DNA of 64,000 nucleotides from Trichosphaerium sp. ATCC 40318 (Eukaryota; Protista; Tubulinea): assembly GCA_038496445.1 (NCBI GenBank), contig JALMLS010000050.1:1-64000 (forward strand), in the 5' to 3' direction. The notes under the pieces are model-generated. The model ran no database searches and had not been told where the DNA came from. It saw only the letters and a program-made list of their open reading frames with translations. How positions within the stretch are numbered: the first letter of the stretch is position 1; every line of letters starts with the position of its first letter. The position numbers were made by a program, and so were the translations under genes. Of the stretch, positions 4,201-38,525 are shown piece after piece.

Positions 4201-7200
4201 GACTGCGACCAATCGAAAATGCAACATGACCATATAACTTACGGGCAAGGTACTCTTTTTCTCTTACCAACTGAAGAACAAACGGAGTATCCAACTACCA
4301 ACAGTAAGCGCATTTAATCAACAAAAAAAAACAATTAATTACCTCCCACAATTCAACGTTCTTATCAGCAACAATACTTATGCCGCTGTATTGGTTAGGC
4401 GCAGCCATATCTAACAAGCTGTGACAATTACACACTGATCCACGTCCAAGAGATTCCACCCGTATAAGCTTATCCTTCACAAACGACATTTGTCTCACCG
4501 CGCCTGGATACAGAAAACCAAATTAAAAAACAAGTACAACAAAGAAAGTCACTTTAGTACCCGATTTTATGCGATACACTTTTGGGTTGCGTTGAAATTG
4601 CTTAACAATGGTAGCATTCAGTTTGTATGATTTAACGTTAGAGCCTAGAAAAAAGTTATTAGCGACAAGTTTTTGTATAAAATAAAGGTTTTTACCAGCA
4701 GTCAAGATTGCCCAGTCACGCTCGCTTAAGTTATATGAAATAGATCCTGACATAATATCTGGTGTTGCACGTTTATTTGCATCACTAGAAGCAGCAGATG
4801 AGCGCGTTCTAGCACGTTTGTGGAATTTTAACTGCAAAGGAAATTAGCACCAGACGTTTTTCGAAAAATCAGGTTCTCGTACCACACGTGGACTCTTCTC
4901 AGAAAATGCCCTAGATACACTACCACCGCGCTGTAAATTGGCAAAATCCATGCTCTGGCTGCTAGCTTTTGAAGATTTTGGTAGATTAGCTTGTTCCTGC
5001 AATGCAGCATTGTTTTCCTCACCTAACAACGTTAGTATGTTCAATGTAAAGAAAAAGATGTCGTTGTATTCCATCAATAACCAACACGTACGAAGTTTTG
5101 CAATAGCATAAAGAACACCCTCTTCGCGCCATTTTGGTGCTTTAGTGATGTAATCTTGAATCTCCTAATCACAAAAAAAGTTAAACAAAGTTTGATTGAT
5201 GTCTTTTGTCTTCCTTTTTTCATCAATACTTACCGGTACTGCTTTGAAACTATACCTAGCTGTAAACCGCTTGACATCCCATATACGTTTAGCAACTTGC
5301 TCGAGCTTAAACCAATTAATTCGTCCATCCTCAAGCTTTGTTTTAGTAACTTCTTGCAATGGAGCCAATTCCAGACAAATTACAGCTTCACATTTTTTGT
5401 TAGTAAAGAATCTTCATTGTGAATGGTGACGTACACAGTAAGGGTATTGTAGGTAAGTTATTATTTATCTTTGCTAGTTGTGCTCTGTATGTAGCAAACT
5501 TTCCTTCAGCGTTACATAATTTTGTAACACCGTCGAACATATCTTTTATTTTCTTGTCTGTGTTTACAATCTAAAACGAAAACGGATGAGAAATAAAGGT
5601 AGCCAACATAACTTAAATTTATCTAGACTAGACTTATTGGAGTTTTACGTACTTCCCAGACCGATTTGAGTTTACTAATAGCACTCAAGTGAAGCGCGCT
5701 AGCAACAGCCATACATCCATTGAAGTTTCTTAATGTCATCAAGTGCTACGAATTAGATTAGATTCAAAGTTTGACTCTATCTTTTTATACTCACATCTGC
5801 GACAACTATAAAATGAGCAATAATCATAGCAGCTGTTTCTATTTGAAACTGCTTTAAAATTTCTGTAGATACCTAAACAATGTCATGAATTCCAAAACCA
5901 AGAACTTAAAAAAAATTGTTTTGACTTAATTGCGTTGTTGACGACATGTCATGACGTACCCATCTTGAAAAACTGTTTGTAAGGGAAATCAAACCGGATA
6001 AATTAGGTGATCGTTCTGGATAATTAAAAGCACCGTCGTGAAACTCCTAACGCGGTAATTAGTCAGCGAGACGTTTTTTTAACGAAAAAACCGCACTTTG
6101 CTTGAGATTTTACCAAAGTAAGCCTCGCTCATAAGTGTCATTTGTCTCGCAATTTCAACTGGATCCAATTCGGTTACTGTAAACCCAGGTAACGGAACAA
6201 CACTAGTAATAAATAAATAAAGCAAAAAAGTAAACTAAGCATGAGAGAAAAAAAAAATCACGTGATACATACGGAGAAGGGCAATTCCAAAGACCTTTAT
6301 CATCAGGAGGATTTTTTAAATTAGCCAGTTGCTTCTTTGCTTGCATACGTAATTGAGAAGCTGCTTCAGTGTCATCAGCACCAACCATGTCACAGAATGC
6401 GTAAAATTGCCTAAGCAGCGGTTGGTTTTAAAAGAAAAAGAGAACGAAGGTGAATTTAAAAAAAAAGGCATAACGCGGGTATGTAACCAAAGAAAAAGTG
6501 TATTAATGGTCGTACTGCAACAAGGATTCATCCAAAAAGTCGGCACCATCATCAAGGAAGAGCCATTTGCTTACTAAGCTTACAGCAGGATCTTTACCAC
6601 CTAGTTTATTATACCGATCGTGTGTCTTTGTCATAAGGTCCGATGGCGTAATGATATGACGGTACGTTAGGAAAAAATCCCGTACAAAAGTCTTTAGGTC
6701 CCAAGCATCGTTTAAAGTAGCTAGAATAGACGTAAGCGACGAGAGCATATAAAGACAAAAATTAAGGTACAATTAGTAGGCAATGCAGAGAGTGTAATGA
6801 GATCCATGTCAGTAGCTTTTTCAAGAGCCAATAGACCTAAGAATATTAAGGACTTTAGAGCTACAGCGCTTTTTTGTTTGTATCACAACGAACCTTTCTT
6901 AGGCCCTGGTATAAACACGCCCTCAAAGTGTCCTAATGCATTATCATGCAGCCAAGCTAGGTTAAAGCACTTAGATGATTTTACAAGCATTATTAGTCGA
7001 TCAAAAAAAAAAAAAAAGCGAAACATACCTGCTACTTCTTCCTTCGACCATCCTGGAATAGCACCAGATTTCTTTGTTCTAGATTTTGATCGATCCAAAA
7101 CACTTTTCCTATCTCTCTTTTTCTCTTTAGAGCTTCGTCGTTTCTGTTTTCTGGCCTTAGGTGCGTCTAAAGTGTTATTTGAGTTCTGTTTCCGGTGAGA

Positions 7201-26598: not shown

Positions 26599-29004
<2,406 letters not shown>

Positions 29005-29499
29005 CTTTAACGTTTTAGTAGCTGGGAACTAATCGAGAAATAGTTAAGTTTCGTTTTAAGCCAGGCTGGCAGTCAGGTGATTACTCCACGTGATGAAGCA
29101 GTGGGACCTGTAAACCTTTTGCCAATACCCTGAATAAAGGCGAGCAAAGTGCTCCAGACACGATTGACTACGAAAGACTTGACATGCATTGATTGTGTAA
29201 TTATTACTCGTGGGCCGAATTCTTTAAAAATACAAATACCCACAACTGTAACGTTTATATACACCAAGACAGGTCATCACCACACCAAAAGGTACGCGTT
29301 ACTCTGAGCATGAAGTATTTTAGAAACATACACCGATAAAAACACATAATTGTTGCGCTTTGAGTTGCTTCCACGCATTGAGGCAAAATTTGGTGGTATT
29401 TTCAACGATTTGTGCTTTCAGAGAGAAATTCGTTCCATAAGCCATACTAATACGCAAAACATAGGGTATGGGCCGTAAGAAAACTAAAGCACTACTATT

Positions 29500-32400
29500 A
29501 TGACCTCATGGAAAGGAAGAATCAACGAGCTTTGTATGAAACGCAGATGGGATTTGCCAAAGTACGTTGTTCTGGCTACTCGCACTTTCTTTTAGGCAGC
29601 TTTTTCAGAGCAGTTTCACAAAAAAATTGTGCCTCCGCCAGGTGTCGCGCTGTTCACACCCATCGCGTAAATACGGTGTTCTAATCGTCGTACAAGGTAT
29701 TCAACCACAGCCGAAGGCCCACCTCACATGCCAAAATATTTTGCTTCTGTAGAGATAGATGGAATGGTATACAAGACGCTGCAACACGCTCGCACTAAAA
29801 AGGTATTCAAAGAACTTTTCGAAAAAATTAGATTTGTTTTTTTCAAGCACAGCGTTTTTCTAATTGTGCAAAATTTGCTCTAAGAGGAAACTCTTCTAAA
29901 ACAACTACACACCGCCGATCATTCAGATCAATTTCAATTTAAGCACGTGTCACGTTTAAGTAAGCTGTCTTTTTTTTTGCATTTTTTCTCTGAGAGGTCT
30001 ACAAAAATTTTGGTGCCCAGCACCTAGCGTTGGGGTTCCTAAACAGGCCTATGGATCGTTTAGATGACTTGAGCTCCCCACCTTACGGCCTGTGGGTTTT
30101 ACACGATCCTATGGAACTTATAGACTCTCAAACTAACGCTGGTAAGTTAGCACAACAACAAGCAGCTAAGGTGGCTTACCTCACAATTACCCAAGTACCG
30201 CAACCCACTGTACAGACACCAAGTAGCTATGGGAGCTACGGTAGCACAGGTAAAAGTGCCAAGTCACTTTTGAACGAACACTGTCAGCGTCACAGGCTCC
30301 CCATGCCTCAAATTGATATCATTAAGATGCGTACGTTGTTTTTTTGTTCTCTGTAAACAAAACGGGATTTTCACCTACGTGCTCTTCCCAATTTACTAGT
30401 CACCTCTCTTATTAAAACTAAAAAGGTTTTACGCCTCAGTTTTTGTAGAGTAGCGTATTAACTTATTATTTTTTAATTTAAAGTCGGGTTCTTAATTTTC
30501 TCCCTTTTAGCTGTTTCGCCAAATAGTATACATGTAAATTACCAAGCTATAACGACATTTGAGGGTAGAAACTTTAGGTCTGATCCAAAAGCAAGAGTAA
30601 AAGAGGCAGACCAGGTAAGAAAAATAAAAAATTATTCAAGTTGGAAGACGAACCTGACATTTTCTGAGACTTTTGTGTTAGGATATAGCGTCTAAGATAC
30701 TCACGTGGTTGATGAGACCGACGAGAGTAGATAATCGCGATGTAGACCAAAAACCAACGCCGCGTCGTGAGTCACATCCTCTTGATCGAGAAATATCTCC
30801 TGGTGGGCTTAGAGGTGGTGGGTTACCTCGTCGTGGACGTACAGATACTACTCATGTCGAAAGTAAAAAACCTAGAATGGAGGTACGAAGAAAATCGATT
30901 TTTTTGTAGTACTGGATCTAAAGGCGAGCTTAGGATCCCTATGGTGATGATTATGGTAGGGGCTATGGCGAGGTATTGTGTTTTTGATTTGATTTTGTGT
31001 TGCTAACAGGTTTTGTGTAGAATTATAATGCGAGCAGGGCTACTGATTCGCGTAGAACACGAGAACGCAGGGTTGATTTTGTACGATAAGACTACTCAGC
31101 TGAGGGAGAAATTATTTACATTTTGATATTTAGGATGATTATGAAGAAAATACAATAGAGGCACGCAATGAACTCAAAGACCATAGACAGGTGAGGTTTT
31201 TGAGTATCTCTTTTTTAATTACTAACAGTTTCTTTTACAGCCTGATCTACAGTTTACTACTCAAGCCAGGGCATCTCCATCGCCGGCGAATAGATCTCCT
31301 GGAAATAAGGACTTGCATGTAAAGATGCATGCAAGTCCTTCAGAACGTGCTGCTCCAAAAAAATTAGGCGAACTGGAACTCCTTTCAGAAAATGTTGTAA
31401 CTCCAAACCCGCGAAACTTTGTATCTCCTAAATTTTCTGACGACGAAGAAGATGTTCCTACGCGCCTCAATCGCCCACCACCAGCAGACTTTGTATCTTC
31501 CCCATACATGGAACCACCTCCACCTAATTTTGCGACTCCAAAAGGGCGCAACCCACCTGCTCCATTTTACGAAGACGATGAAGAAGCTCCTACGTTTCGT
31601 AATCGCCCACCGCCAATTAATAGACTAAGCCCAGAGAAACCTCAATACCAAACTCGCCTTGACGATCTAACAAATCAAGAGACATCTGAACCTCGTTTAC
31701 GACCTTCCTATGCAAAGCGACCAAACCAAGAGACTCCTGAATACAGTTACAGATCTCCTGACGCTTCTCCTTCTAAACGACCAACTCAACAACCTCCTCA
31801 ATACCGCTATCCTCCTGACGATGCGCCTACGCGGCGACAACACCCTGGTTTCGCGGATACAGCACCACCAATACCAGCTGCATCACAGCGTAAACCGTCT
31901 CAGTCTGCAATATCCGAATTGAATGAGATGTGCCAAGAATGGCGATTGACTCCTGTTATATACAAACAAGAAGGTAGAGAAGGTCCAGATCACGCTCCTT
32001 GGTTTCTATTTTCTGTGACTATCTCTGGACGCAAGTTTATGGGAAAATGGCAGCAAACTAAGAAGAAGGCAAAGCATCAATGCGCAAGTAAGGCATTGGC
32101 TTCTTTGAGAGTAGCTGGTAAAGAAAAAGTTGAACAGATGGCGAGGTAACATATTTTTCCGATTTTCTCTCAGAGACAATTTTTGAACTCAATGACTGAC
32201 TCTTTTTTTGAAGTGAATCGATTTTCAACCCACCACCTACACCGTCTTATCAAGAACGTCGTAGACCACCAGTACATTCACAACACCCTGAAGATCGTTA
32301 CGAACGGCCAGAACGTTATGAACAGCGTGGTTCGCAGTATGAGGAGTACCGTAGACCAGAGTATAGATATAAAGAAGAACAGGATAGGAGAGGAGACTAT

Positions 32401-32871
32401 GATAGGTATGCTAGAAGACCAGATGAAGATAACTACCCACGACAAGATCGGAGATACGAACAGGGAGATTACGAGTACTATCCTCAACGTAGGGCACCTC
32501 CACCACAGCGGTATGATGAGTATGGCTACAGTGATTCTCATCAGACACCATATACACAGCAGCGGCCTACTAGGCGGCGCTCTCCTCCGAGAGCACCAAG
32601 ACCTGAATGGGATGATACGCCGCGCGATTCTCACACTCAGCAACGCAGAGCTACTAGATCACCTGCTACGCACTCCCCACCTCACTCACCCCATCCAAGC
32701 GGCCAAGCAGAGTTTCACAGCCCACAATCAGCTAAGCAATCTCCTAAAGCAGCATCTCCAAAATATGTTGATGTTAGTACAGCTGATCTTAATGCTGTCT
32801 TAAGCGCACTTGGAGATGACTTGTCACAAGCTCAGATTGAAAACCTTACTAGGCAGTTAGACAACATGTAA
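29500..32871 (+). CDS. Double-stranded RNA-binding protein with three dsRBDs and Pro/Arg/Tyr-rich disordered regions (DRB-like)
   Basis: dsRBD1 WKGRINELCMKRRWDLPKY..EGPPHMPKYFASVEIDG...TKKLAQQQAA; dsRBD2 AKSLLNEHCQRHRLPMP...VKEADQDIA; dsRBD3 ISELNEMCQEWRL..EGPDHAPWFLFSVTISG..TKKKAKHQCA. No RNase III or deaminase domain seen. Confidence 0.88.
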
Positions 32872-32906
32872 CTTATCCTCCTAACCAGTTAGGAAGATGT
32901 TGTAAA

Positions 32907-33053
32907 TCTTATCACCTCCTAACTAAGGCGGTGGTGGTTGGATCCTTGAGCGTAGTGCCCTATGTCATGATGTGCAAAGTTAATATCATGACCGTAGGTC
33001 ACTACGCCCATTTGTTCGCAATCACCACCGCCATAGTTAGTAGTGTGATAAGA
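32907..33053 (+). ncRNA. Long imperfect RNA hairpin (pri-miRNA-like or 3'-UTR dsRNA element)
   Basis: Nested pairings: TCTTATCAC/GTGATAAGA, CTAACTA/TAGTTAG, GGCGGTGGTGGTTG/CAATCACCACCGCC, GCGTAGTG/CACTACGC, CCTAT/GTAGG, GTCATGAT/ATCATGAC. Wobbles are G-U on the + strand. Confidence 0.7.
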
Positions 33054-33170
33054 CGTATTGTTTAGCTGTCTGGGACTAAAATGAGCAAGACAAAACAATA
33101 ATAATAAAGTATAATCATGTATAACGTAGTCTTTCGTGTTGCTATACTTTCCACAATCCGTGATCAATAC

Positions 33171-35933
33171 ATGGCAGTCTCTGTTATTAAACGACGTCAC
33201 AATGTTGAGTACAACATTGAAGCTGTTTACCTTTTACGATTAAAACTTGCTTTTTTTGGCGTAAGGCAGCAACGGTCAGCGAAAGTAATTGTAGAAAGCA
33301 GAAGTGACATTGTTGTAGCTTGTTGTATATGGCAGCGCGTTACTACGCGACATTCAGTACCGATCAAGGTTCTAAAAGTACTATTTTGCGTAATTCTAAA
33401 CGCGCTAGGTTTTAACCGCGGTAAAGTCGGCCAGGAATCATCACTTGGCTTTACCATAGGCGGAAGGTAGGCTTATATCGTTTTGGAAGGCACTAACCGG
33501 AACAGAAAACCAGGTGACAACATTGTAGCGAAAAAGCTACAATTACAAATAACAGGGCCTGATAAGGTTAAAGTAAAATTATCTATTGCCAGTAATTGGG
33601 TAACAGCAAAGTACACACCACAAAAGGTATGTTGAGTTACATTGTACACTATACAATGCTAATCAACCATAGCCAGGCAATTATGCTGTTTCGGTACAAT
33701 ATGAAAATACAAAATGCTCTCACGACCCTATAAACATAATAATACTCAAGGATTGTGCGTGTACAAGGGTTCATAGCGCATAAATTAACTTTTGTAGCAA
33801 ATACTCCTTCCAGTTCCCCACCTGGTTCAATATCGCCCAGAACATCACCAAGGGGTCAGACTAAGCAACCCAAGCAACCTAAGCAACCAAAGCCGAAAAA
33901 AGAAAAAATCAAAAAAGCAAAAGAAAAACAAGAAGGAAGAAGCAAATTATGGCTAAGCGTAAAAGGAGTATTCTCAACAGGACCTAGTGATGGCGAAAAG
34001 TCACCTAGACAAAAGTCAGCGAAATCTCCAAAAAAACAGAAAAAAGCCGAAAAAGCAGCCTTCAAGAAGAGCCAAAGAGAGGCAAAGAAGAAGAAAAAGA
34101 AAGGAAAAACAACAAAGAAAGCAATGATACAACGAGCTTCATCTGATAAGCATCTGAGAAACAGAAATCCAGAATTCAATAATTTTCCTAAACGTGAAAA
34201 CTTAGAATTTGATCTTGAATTTCCAAGCCGTAAAAACTCTAGACCTAACTGGCTTCAACAAAATGCAACTCCTCCAGTAAGTGTTAGACTTAGAGGAGAA
34301 CAACAAGGTATTTTAAATGTACCACGTGTTTCCAGTATCTGACTTTTTTCAGAAGTTGCACCTCTACCTATTAAAACAAATGAAGCTGCGCCTCCACCTA
34401 TAAAAACAAATGAAGTTGCACCTCTACCTATAAAAACTAATGAAGCTCCTCCACCACCTATAAAAACAGCTCCTAGACCACCAGGTCCACTTATTAGGCA
34501 ACCACCTCCTGAGACATATAAAAGGCCAGCTTGGAATGCTACACCCAAAGCTACACCTACAATACCGACGACAAAACAAGAAAATAAACCCACTTGGCAA
34601 CAACGACAACAGCAACAACGACAACAACAACAAAGACAACAACAACTACAACAGCAACAAAAAGCTAAACCACAGGTAACATACCCATGAAATGATGACG
34701 TTGTTTATCTAACTTTTAAGCAGGTCAACAAACCTACGTATACTGTAGTAACACAACCTAATTCAACTGCAAAACCACAAAGAGCAGTACGTTTCAAAAA
34801 CCGATACGAGCTATTACGGTTTGACTCACATGTTTTTTAGCCAGCTCCTAAAAAGAAAGTAGCTCCTACAACAGCCACTCAAAGCCCAGCAACTAGTCTT
34901 GTATGCTTTCATATAAAGAGTTTATTATAAAGCGCTAACGAACGTATAGGCACCAACAAAGCCTGCAAAAAGACAATTCCGACGTTCAATGTAAGTGACA
35001 TTTTGACACATTCCATTCAGAGAAAACGAAGACTCCACTTTTTTTTCTCTTCTTTCTTCTTGCGTTTCAGCCGCTAACTTCGTGTTTAGGTCTGTTCCTG
35101 CTCTTAATGTTACACAAGGAGATAAATGGCTAAGTCTTATGAACAAGAACAGGTACACCTTTAACAAAATGACAAGGTGCTAATACTTTTCTTTTTTTTT
35201 TCCAGACAAAACGAGCATAACGCTATAAATGCTGAATCAGATGCCCGAACAGCAAAGGGTGTTCAATGGGTTATTAGAGAAATGAAAAAATTAATTAAGG
35301 TCATCATTCAAAATGGAAAAAAAGGTACCAAGACCATGCAGGCAGCCGCTTCGTTTGGTGTTTTTTTTGCCTATTAATTTTTTTCTTCGAAGGGTCTGAC
35401 GGAAAGTATCACATATCTTATGGTGAACTGTTCGAAAAGACTATGGACGCATTTGAAGCTCTATCTGGCACATTACGTGCAGCAAAAAAACAGAAAGTAG
35501 TTTCATACCAAGGAGAGATGTTACTACGTGGAGCGTCAAATAATGTTGACATTACGCTTCTACAAGAAACATTTGACGAGAGTCAAGCCATAAAACAAAT
35601 ACACAACACAAAGGTACTAAGAATCTACCTTGATATTTACTTATATTAACACGTGTTTCACAGGTCACAAGAGGTGCAAAGAAGCCACTAAAGATACAAA
35701 AAGAGGAGAGCGTTTTCCAAAAAGCGACATGTTCGAAATGTCAGAAAACTGTTTATCCAAATGAACGGCTTGCAGCAAATGGACATATAAGACATAAGAC
35801 GTGTTTTACATGTCATGTATGTAATAGCAAGCTACGTATTACAGATTATGCATTTGCGAATGATCGTTTTTATTGCTTGCCTCATTACAAGCGTATAGTA
35901 CAAGAAACTGGAGGTAACTATTCAGGTTTGTAA
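33171..35933 (+). CDS. Actin-cytoskeleton protein: filamin repeat, basic/Pro/Gln-rich linker, Costars domain, LIM domain
   Basis: Filamin repeat GKVGQES..FTI...ITGPD...YTPQKPGNYAVSVQY; Costars GELFEKTMDAFEALSGTLRAAKKQKVVSYQGEMLLRG; LIM CSKCQKTVYPNE...HKTCFTCHVC...YCLPHY. The 5' exons are approximate. Confidence 0.85.
34355..34470 (+). repeat. 30-nt coding tandem repeat, about 4 copies (xAPxPIKTNE)
   Basis: gttgcacctctacctattaaaacaaatgaa-type units repeated in tandem. Confidence 0.85.
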
Positions 35934-36129
35934 AAAAGATAAGTAAGTTGTGTTATGTATGTAAGAAGATCAAAAAAAAACCTTCAGTTAAAATAAACTA
36001 CTTGAAGTATTGTGTATCGAAAAAATTGATGTATTATTGTGTCAGTATTCATTATTTACAGGCACCTTCCTATGTAGAAATAAATCCAATAAATCTGGTA
36101 TCAAATACAAATGTATCTTTTAGTCACGT

Positions 36130-36400
36130 GCTCAGCAACGACCTGCATAGGTTGTTTTAGCAACAGTATACACTTGCCGTAATACATGCAATAATACAAC
36201 CCACAATAACAAGACGAGTAGCAAACCGTCACATGGGAACATGAAAGAAAAACGCAGAAGGAAAGCGAAAAAACGTACGAACAATAGCAACGGGTATTTC
36301 CCATGCAAGTTGATCCAGCTATTCAACTACTTTTAAGGGTCGTTATCCAAAAAATGCAAGGTACCCTTCGCCTGTAAATCAATCAAGTAGCCACGTACAT
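36130..36400 (-). pseudogene. Degenerate third paralog of the small Cys-rich membrane protein family
   Basis: WEIPVAIV followed by a homologous intron and Cys-rich TM tail. The intron acceptor is changed (gtttgttAG to gtttgctAC) and the 5' part is not recognisable. Confidence 0.55.
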
Positions 36401-37069
36401 TATTGAAAGGAGGTTTCTATGTCTGATCAAACCAAATCCTCTAATTCGTCATTAACGTCCTTGGTAGTACCTTAATTTATTAATACAAATAGAACGATAC
36501 TTGTGAACAGTTACAATGGGTTTTCTTTTCTCGCTTTCTTTATACTGCTGACTCCTTTTAGTTCTATTTTTTGGTGGTAGTATAACAATACAAAAATGCA
36601 GTACATTTGTTGGTATAAAAGGAGACCTCAAGTCACGTGCTCAAAAACGGAAAACATTTTAAGTTCATTCAAGTTTGTAAAAACCTGTTATTGGCCTATG
36701 GGAGTCAAGTTAGCTATTGCGGGTTGGCTGCCGCATGGCTCACTACAACACAAATAAAATTCTGATGCAGACAATAAACTTCGTGTACACCAGATAACAG
36801 GATTTACCGTTGTAACTCCTGTTAAATTTTTTGCCAGTTCAGTTTTCTACCTAAACCATTTATCCGCGTATTTGTCCATACAAGCTTAAAGCCACGCGTT
36901 CCATACCCTGTAGACATAAACTAACCCACTCAGAAAAGGCTTTTTTACCGTTTATCTTTTTTGCTAGTGAGTGTGTTTCAGGAAGTGCACGAAATAGTTT
37001 TGTTTTTATTGAACCATTACATGAGAAAGAATTGTTTGTTATATGTATGAGACCTTCCTGTACGCAAAA

Positions 37070-37525
37070 TTAAGCATAGGTAGGTTGTTTCTTCTTGCGA
37101 GCAACAAGTACGCATCCAACAATGCATCCAATACAACAGCCCAAAAGAGCAATACCACCTAACAAATAGTCACGTGAGAACAGGAAACAAAAACAACAAT
37201 GGGGAAGGGAAAGAAAAAACGTACCAATGATAGCAACGGGTAGTACCCATTTCTTCAGACACGCTGAGCCAACGACTTGATCCGTACAACATTCTGCCAT
37301 TATACCAGCATCTTTATTCATAATAGTGCCACTGCATGTACAGCAAAAATCCCAACCATTGTACTCAATAAACAACTCATTTGCTGGACAACTTGTATCT
37401 AGAGTTACTTCACAGCTTATGCCATCAGTATCTGGCCCTGACGACATTAGTTTCGTCTCTGCAAGGAACGTAGAGGCGCATAGGTATGCGAAAGATAGTA
37501 TTAGGACGAGAGTAGTTGCTGTCAT
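37070..37525 (-). CDS. Small Cys-rich single-pass membrane protein (tandem paralog A), one intron
   Basis: Signal peptide, Cys-rich ectodomain (DFCCTCSG), TM segment split by a short intron, tail RKKKQPTYA. Confidence 0.8.
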   Translation of the reverse strand: MTATTLVLILSFAYLCASTFLAETKLMSSGPDTDGISCEVTLDTSCPANELFIEYNGWDFCCTCSGTIMNKDAGIMAECCTDQVVGSACLKKWVLPVAIIGTFFLSLPHCCFCFLFSRDYLLGGIALLGCCIGCIVGCVLVARKKKQPTYA

Positions 37526-38525
37526 TGTGGTGGAAGATAAATATGGGTGTAACTCACAACTTTTACTTCACGGAACAGGAGAAAAAAACGGTCCACCAAG
37601 CAAAAAAGCATACTATTGTTTATTGTCCATGTCATACAAGTTAGAAGATTTTTTGCCAGTTCATATTTCTCCGGAAAACTTGCAAGTTGCAAATTTTATC
37701 AAACCTTGCACGACTTTGCGAGATTGTTTATGAGTGTAGCACTGCACTAGAGTACACACGCTAACCTGTTGAAGTATCCTTATAGAGTACAGTGTGATGT
37801 AGGTCCAGAAAGTCACGTGCTCATTACTGATTGTGAGTTACTTCTTGAAATAGCGTTATTTCAGGGCAACTTCAATGGATAGATTTGAAGTTTTCTGGAA
37901 TGTAGACTTGAAGAATGAAGAAATAATTTTTGACAGTCTAAAATCTGGTCGAATTACAAAGTTGTCCTATGATGGAGTCGGTTAGTTTTTGCTTATTATT
38001 TTGCCTCCGATGCTTACTACAATACGAGCAAAGTGCTTTAGAGTAATTTCACATGTCAGGTTTCATGTAAAACAAGGACATCTTTTGTTGTACTTCTTGA
38101 AATGGTACGGTAATTGGCTGTTTTACAGGACTTTGCGTTACCAATCGCCCCTAAGAAAACTCATAATTTTATGCTCCTACAAACTTTTCTTTTTAGCCAT
38201 CATTTGCTTTGTAGTTATCTGTGGGCGTAAGGTATTCATTACAAAAGTTCTTAGCCAAATAAAAATATCCCAGGTTTAAATGAAAGTCGACATGTAATAA
38301 AGTTAATAAAACCATAATTCTCCTTACCTCGTACCTGTAGCAACTCATCTTATAACCGTAGCTAAGTTAGTCGACATAGTCGAACGGATGAAAACTAATT
38401 GAAAAAACAAAATGTATGCGCTTTCTTTGTTAAAATAGTTTATTATGAAACACGTGCAAAAGAGTTTCTCCATTGTATTGTTCGCACGTAACAAGTCAAT
38501 CATCGAGACCTTGCTGTGCGTAAAA

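Follow-up and report, generated by a model that had tools for sequence, protein, structure and literature searches.

The window analysed here, a 64,000-nt stretch of a Trichosphaerium sp. contig, carries on its + strand a gene for a protein with three dsRBDs, followed by an inverted repeat of 147 nt (32907-33053) and, further downstream, by a second gene in the same orientation. The model of the dsRBD gene was read from the sequence. It has ten exons, at 29500-29561, 29697-29802, 30147-30330, 30511-30614, 30682-30882, 30934-30972, 31021-31080, 31134-31190, 31241-32145 and 32214-32871, which together encode 791 codons (792 including the stop); all splice phases fit, including that between the last coding exon and the one before it. 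Domain and homology searches were run exon by exon and not on the joined protein. Exons 1-5 (29500-30882) gave partial dsrm matches in Pfam and encode an N-terminal dsRBD1 together with a degenerate dsRBD2, and exon 9 encodes a P-rich linker and dsRBD3 (PF00035, E 2.5e-12). The dsRNA-contact motifs are kept in dsRBD1 (GPPH and KK...A) and, in canonical form, in dsRBD3 (GPDHAP and KKKAK), and they are missing from dsRBD2. Exon 10 specifies a low-complexity R/P/Y/E-rich tail with no Pfam domain, ending ...LTRQLDNM before the stop codon TAA at 32869-32871. The short introns (48-53 nt) at 30973-31020 and 31191-31240 have yeast-like branch motifs, TACTAAC and GCTAAC, 10-20 nt before the acceptor, and three of the ten donor sites in the gene are GTACG.

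The closest solved structures are the dsRBDs of Arabidopsis DRB4, of ADARs, of DRB3 and of Loquacious. A word-indexed search with exon 31241-32143 gave no match and no close homologue, and an exhaustive HMMER search against 1.84 billion representatives returned distant dsRBD proteins only. As the best match in that library reached 36% identity over one dsRBD, no orthology of the protein to DGCR8, HYL1 or RbdB was found. A look-up of the exact product found nothing, the ESM Atlas gave generic dsRBD clusters only, all below 0.9, and scans of metagenome contigs with the end of the coding sequence and with a 23-mer of the hairpin matched neither query. Proteins of this kind are few in the genome, in which only five dsrm matches occur. 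The genome also holds RNase III domains at no fewer than seven loci, as well as Piwi domains, and machinery for processing dsRNA is therefore present.

The hairpin begins 36 nt beyond the stop codon of the dsRBD gene. The AATAAA listed in the preliminary description lies at 33103-33108 on the + strand, 50 nt beyond the hairpin, and is the only one on this strand between 30623 and 34583 (~4 kb). The motif is over-represented in the 64-kb window, with 149 occurrences observed against 112 expected. The downstream gene has its own AATAAA at 35992, ~60 nt past its stop codon. We take 33103-33108 to be the probable poly(A) signal of the upstream dsRBD gene; an mRNA using it would have a 3′ UTR of ~255 nt, 147 nt of which would be the hairpin. 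Because the hairpin sits between the dsRBD stop codon and the first AATAAA, it most likely lies within the 3′ UTR of the dsRBD mRNA. The downstream + strand gene (33755-35933, with a provisional 5′ end) comprises a lysine-rich exon, a proline repeat of the APPPIKTNE type and a Costars domain (E 1.7e-12), and its last exon is rich in cysteine. Between the two genes lies a GC-richer segment without an open reading frame (33255-33560), which has no Rfam match and folds no better than chance would allow (z -1.2); we regard it as probable promoter or 5′ UTR sequence belonging to the Costars gene.

Directly after the stop codon, at 32872-32898 on the + strand, the 266-nt fold contains a separate small stem, a mini-hairpin. 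In its 5′ half the sequence of the large hairpin's 5′ terminus recurs (CTTATC--CTCCTAAC versus CTTATCACCTCCTAAC): the local alignment agrees at 14 of 16 positions with one 2-nt gap, and only two of 2000 shuffles score as well. The mini-hairpin may be what is left of a sister copy that collapsed, or else a footprint, and the repeat points to local duplication with deletion, affecting either a hairpin unit or a palindrome still being formed.

Structure and strand sense of the hairpin

In RNAfold, 32907-33053 (+) forms one hairpin without branches, in which 59 base pairs are capped by a 9-nt loop at 32974-32982, in agreement with the ~55-60 bp and 9-nt loop of the preliminary description. All six stem segments given there recur in the RNAfold pair list, the one discrepancy being which C is bulged (32992 or 32993). 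The lower stem has 36 bp (32907-32942 with 33016-33053; two mismatches and two bulges) and is followed by a 4 × 5 internal loop (32943-46/33011-15), and an upper stem of ~25 bp with two mismatches and one bulge extends from there to the 9-nt loop. Altogether the arms differ by three G-U pairs, one A-C mismatch, three transversion mismatches, three single-base bulges and the 4 × 5 loop; they are ~85-90% alike and differ at ~15% of positions. The GC content of the hairpin is 0.46 versus 0.33-0.38 in the flanking non-coding DNA, which bears out the earlier remark that it is GC-rich for its surroundings.

The stability of this fold is far outside what composition would give. On the + strand, the minimum free energy (MFE) is -85.6 kcal/mol, compared with a mean of -35.0 (sd 3.7) for dinucleotide shuffles (z -13.6), and none of the 200 shuffles folds as well. 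The minus strand is nearly as stable (-80.1 kcal/mol, z -12.2), as it must be for any inverted repeat in DNA. As a background, we folded 5,231-5,238 windows of 150 nt from a 264-kb sample, made up of the 64-kb window and, from the twenty largest contigs, twenty segments of 10 kb, which gave a mean of -26.8 and an sd of 6.8. No other fold in this sample is as strong as the hairpin, which reaches -80.4 even when it falls out of register with the folding window, and the runner-up window reaches -60.3; in register, its MFE is 8.6 sd below the background mean. Since only one such fold occurs in the sample, hairpins this strong occur less often than about once in 200 kb. The region 32907-33053 is thus an imperfect hairpin with stability beyond chance, as a microRNA precursor should be. 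An E-value scan of 28000-38000 with Rfam 15 placed no family at the hairpin, and ARAGORN found no tRNA-like tip in it.

The preliminary description called the hairpin pri-miRNA-like. In the animal sense the term does not fit, as an animal pri-miRNA has a stem of ~35 bp, which the 59 bp found here far exceed; the hairpin has more in common with plant or amoebozoan precursors, or with hpRNAs, than with an animal pri-miRNA.

Transcription through the hairpin is expected in the + sense, because both the dsRBD gene upstream and the Costars gene downstream lie on the + strand; no minus-strand gene was found near the hairpin. The wobble pairs had also been taken as a sign of strand, on the argument that three of them read G-U only on the + strand and hence imply selection at the level of the sense RNA. 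The three pairs are real (32937/33022, 32963/32994 and 32972/32984), but the A-C mismatch at 32949/33008, which had been overlooked, is a G-U pair on the minus strand. With three such pairs on one strand against a single one on the other, the asymmetry does not reach significance (binomial p = 0.31) and lends no support to the claim of RNA-level selection.

Copy number and competing explanations

The hairpin is single-copy in the 70.3-Mb assembly. A BLAST search of the whole assembly with 201 nt at E ≤ 10 returned its own locus only and no paralogue, and the same was true genome-wide of a 22-nt terminus pattern and of two stem patterns, each with three mismatches allowed, and of an exact TIR-gap-TIR pattern with degenerate positions. 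Neither possible boundary of the hairpin carries a TSD, the flanks being ...TGTAAA on the 5′ side and CGTATT, or alternatively ACGTAT, on the 3′ side. As a positive control, the same search with the hairpin at G000:C7:106850-106960 (L010:6850-6960) gave at least 76 matches of 74-97% identity, so a family of hairpins like ours would have been detected. This control hairpin folds at -57 kcal/mol per 150 nt, and copies of its repeat are often in tandem, ~105 nt apart, on several contigs (C49:306158-306595 and C95:226271-228964, for example). Many dispersed copies with TSDs, which the preliminary description had named as the mark of a MITE, are hence lacking on both counts in searches of the whole genome, and we rejected a MITE as the leading explanation.

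We consider it very unlikely that the hairpin is nevertheless what remains of a foldback transposon or MITE. Its structure by itself entails terminal inverted repeats, hairpin-forming repeat families do exist in this genome, and the mini-hairpin at 32872-32898 could have been left behind by an excision or be the remnant of a second copy after deletion. Against this, BLAST and the terminus, stem and TIR-gap-TIR patterns found no second copy in 70 Mb, no TSD flanks either boundary, and, with arms that are still ~85-90% alike, the element would be young enough for its sister copies to be recognised. Equally hard to credit, and to us slightly more improbable, is a role tied to splicing or to the end of transcription. 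The motifs GTAAAT...TTTAG bracket the hairpin closely (32902-33065 on the + strand, 164 nt) and resemble the splice sites of the dsRBD gene, which makes them a speculative candidate for a 3′-UTR intron of tailed-mirtron type; yet motifs this short are expected by chance in ~10-20% of cases by our own estimate, and no branch site of the CTAAC type lies near the 3′ end. The hairpin might also act, as DNA or in the nascent RNA, as a terminator or insulator, as would suit two genes in tandem, but the coding exons of the next gene begin ~700 nt further on, and a tight terminator is not needed.

The main rival to the reading preferred below, quite plausible though on balance more likely wrong than right, is that a fairly young, local inverted duplication came to lie in the 3′ UTR without serving any function under selection; it could have arisen by fold-back repair or template switching, and any processing by Dicer would be incidental. 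Several observations agree with such a neutral palindrome. The arms differ without an excess of pair-preserving changes (p 0.31), and their divergence of ~15% also fits an inverted duplication of moderate age. The repetition of the hairpin terminus in the mini-hairpin suggests local dynamics of duplication and deletion. No near-perfect target in trans (≤3 mismatches) for the stem segments 32919-40 and 32950-72 was found in the whole genome, and the searches that were run gave no record of expression. Other single-copy hairpins occur in the genome too: in our sample, G000:C2:102440-102600 (L005:2440-2600) is a second strong one (-60 kcal/mol, with a perfect run of 16 bp), so single-copy hairpins are not unique to the dsRBD locus.

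A neutral palindrome accounts for everything seen except the neighbourhood. Counting against it, the hairpin is the sole fold of such strength in 264 kb, neither the window nor the genome yielded a source sequence for the arm that would have been duplicated, and chance is unlikely to have placed the hairpin beside one of so few dsRBD genes. Taking at most ~15 such hairpins per Mb (none in a 200-kb random sample) and ~5-10 dsRBD genes, we estimate post hoc a chance of at most ~0.04 that a hairpin falls within 250 nt of one of ~10 dsRBD gene ends. The four other dsRBD domains of the genome have no similar hairpin within 1.5 kb, and the association is therefore not a feature of the class.

Candidate role as a 3′-UTR dsRNA element

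The reading we tentatively prefer, with a confidence somewhat short of even, is that the hairpin is a dsRNA element of the 3′ UTR that is fed to an enzyme of the Dicer or Drosha type, possibly with feedback on the dsRBD gene. In its favour stand the extreme fold, the single copy without a TSD, the place between stop codon and AATAAA, the raised GC content, the RNase III and Piwi domains of the genome and the proximity to a dsRBD gene. Against it speak the non-significant wobble asymmetry, the missing near-perfect target in trans, the other dsRBD domains without a similar hairpin nearby, and an arm divergence that a neutral duplication would show too. The hairpin would be transcribed on the + strand within the 3′ UTR of the triple-dsRBD mRNA and act there in cis. 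An A-form helix of 59 bp suffices in length for binding by dsRBD proteins, the gene's own product included, and for cutting by one of the RNase III enzymes of the genome (Dicer/Drosha-type). Such a cut would part the coding region from the poly(A) tail and lower expression in cis, and it would release duplexes of ~21 nt, either as a by-product or as a young miRNA or hpRNA.

Precedents for parts of this scheme exist in animals, where Drosha cleaves hairpins in the DGCR8 mRNA and in other mRNAs (PMC3814725, PMC10954719). By analogy, here too the mRNA of a dsRBD protein would carry a long stem-loop, a possible substrate of the RNase III complex that the protein may serve; its cleavage would give negative feedback. 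The DGCR8 hairpins are of pri-miRNA size and lie in the 5′ UTR and at the start of the coding region, whereas the present hairpin has 59 bp and lies in the predicted 3′ UTR. The proteins differ as well: ours has three dsRBDs in the arrangement A-B-linker-A, and its partnership with a Microprocessor or Dicer is putative. A different comparison is offered by Staufen, in that a long duplex predicted in a 3′ UTR might serve as a platform for proteins with several dsRBDs; the exons scanned with Pfam, however, contain neither Staufen_C nor any other Staufen-specific domain.

Closer to the organism, the Dicer-like enzyme DrnB of Dictyostelium works in miRNA processing with the dsRBD protein RbdB, which has a single N-terminal dsRBD and a P-rich region in 733 aa (PMC4894637); the protein described here differs in having three dsRBDs in 791 aa. 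Amoebozoan pre-miRNAs are mostly 75-125 nt long, the few above 200 nt being read as young, and their loci are mostly single-copy and less AT-rich than intergenic DNA (PMC11014262). The present hairpin loosely matches this picture: it is single-copy, its 147 nt are near that range, its GC content stands above that of its AT-rich non-coding surroundings, and the genome is of the amoeba type with helicase-less RNase III genes. It departs from the reported loci, most of which stand alone between genes or lie in introns, in its place 3′ of a dsRBD gene. As a long, nearly perfect and single-copy inverted repeat, it also resembles the hpRNA loci that yield endo-siRNAs and young plant MIR genes. These usually retain extended complementarity to a parent or target gene, whereas no second locus in the genome matches the present hairpin.

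A more specific version would make the protein a multi-dsRBD cofactor of a Dicer- or Drosha-like enzyme that is regulated through a pri-miRNA-like hairpin in its own 3′ UTR, that is, a loop in the style of the Microprocessor outside animals. We regard this as unlikely; if such a loop resembling that of Drosha and DGCR8 exists, it could have arisen independently or come from a common ancestor. Should the hairpin be cut by RNase III at all, it would provide a compact and testable case of self-regulation in a dsRNA pathway and bear on whether Microprocessor-type feedback predates animals. The lineage is one whose miRNA biogenesis is barely charted: until a study of 2024, by that study's own account, Dictyostelium discoideum was the sole amoebozoan with convincingly identified miRNAs (PMC11014262). 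If the hairpin is just a young palindrome, it would capture at one moment the kind of sequence that is believed to give rise to new miRNA genes.
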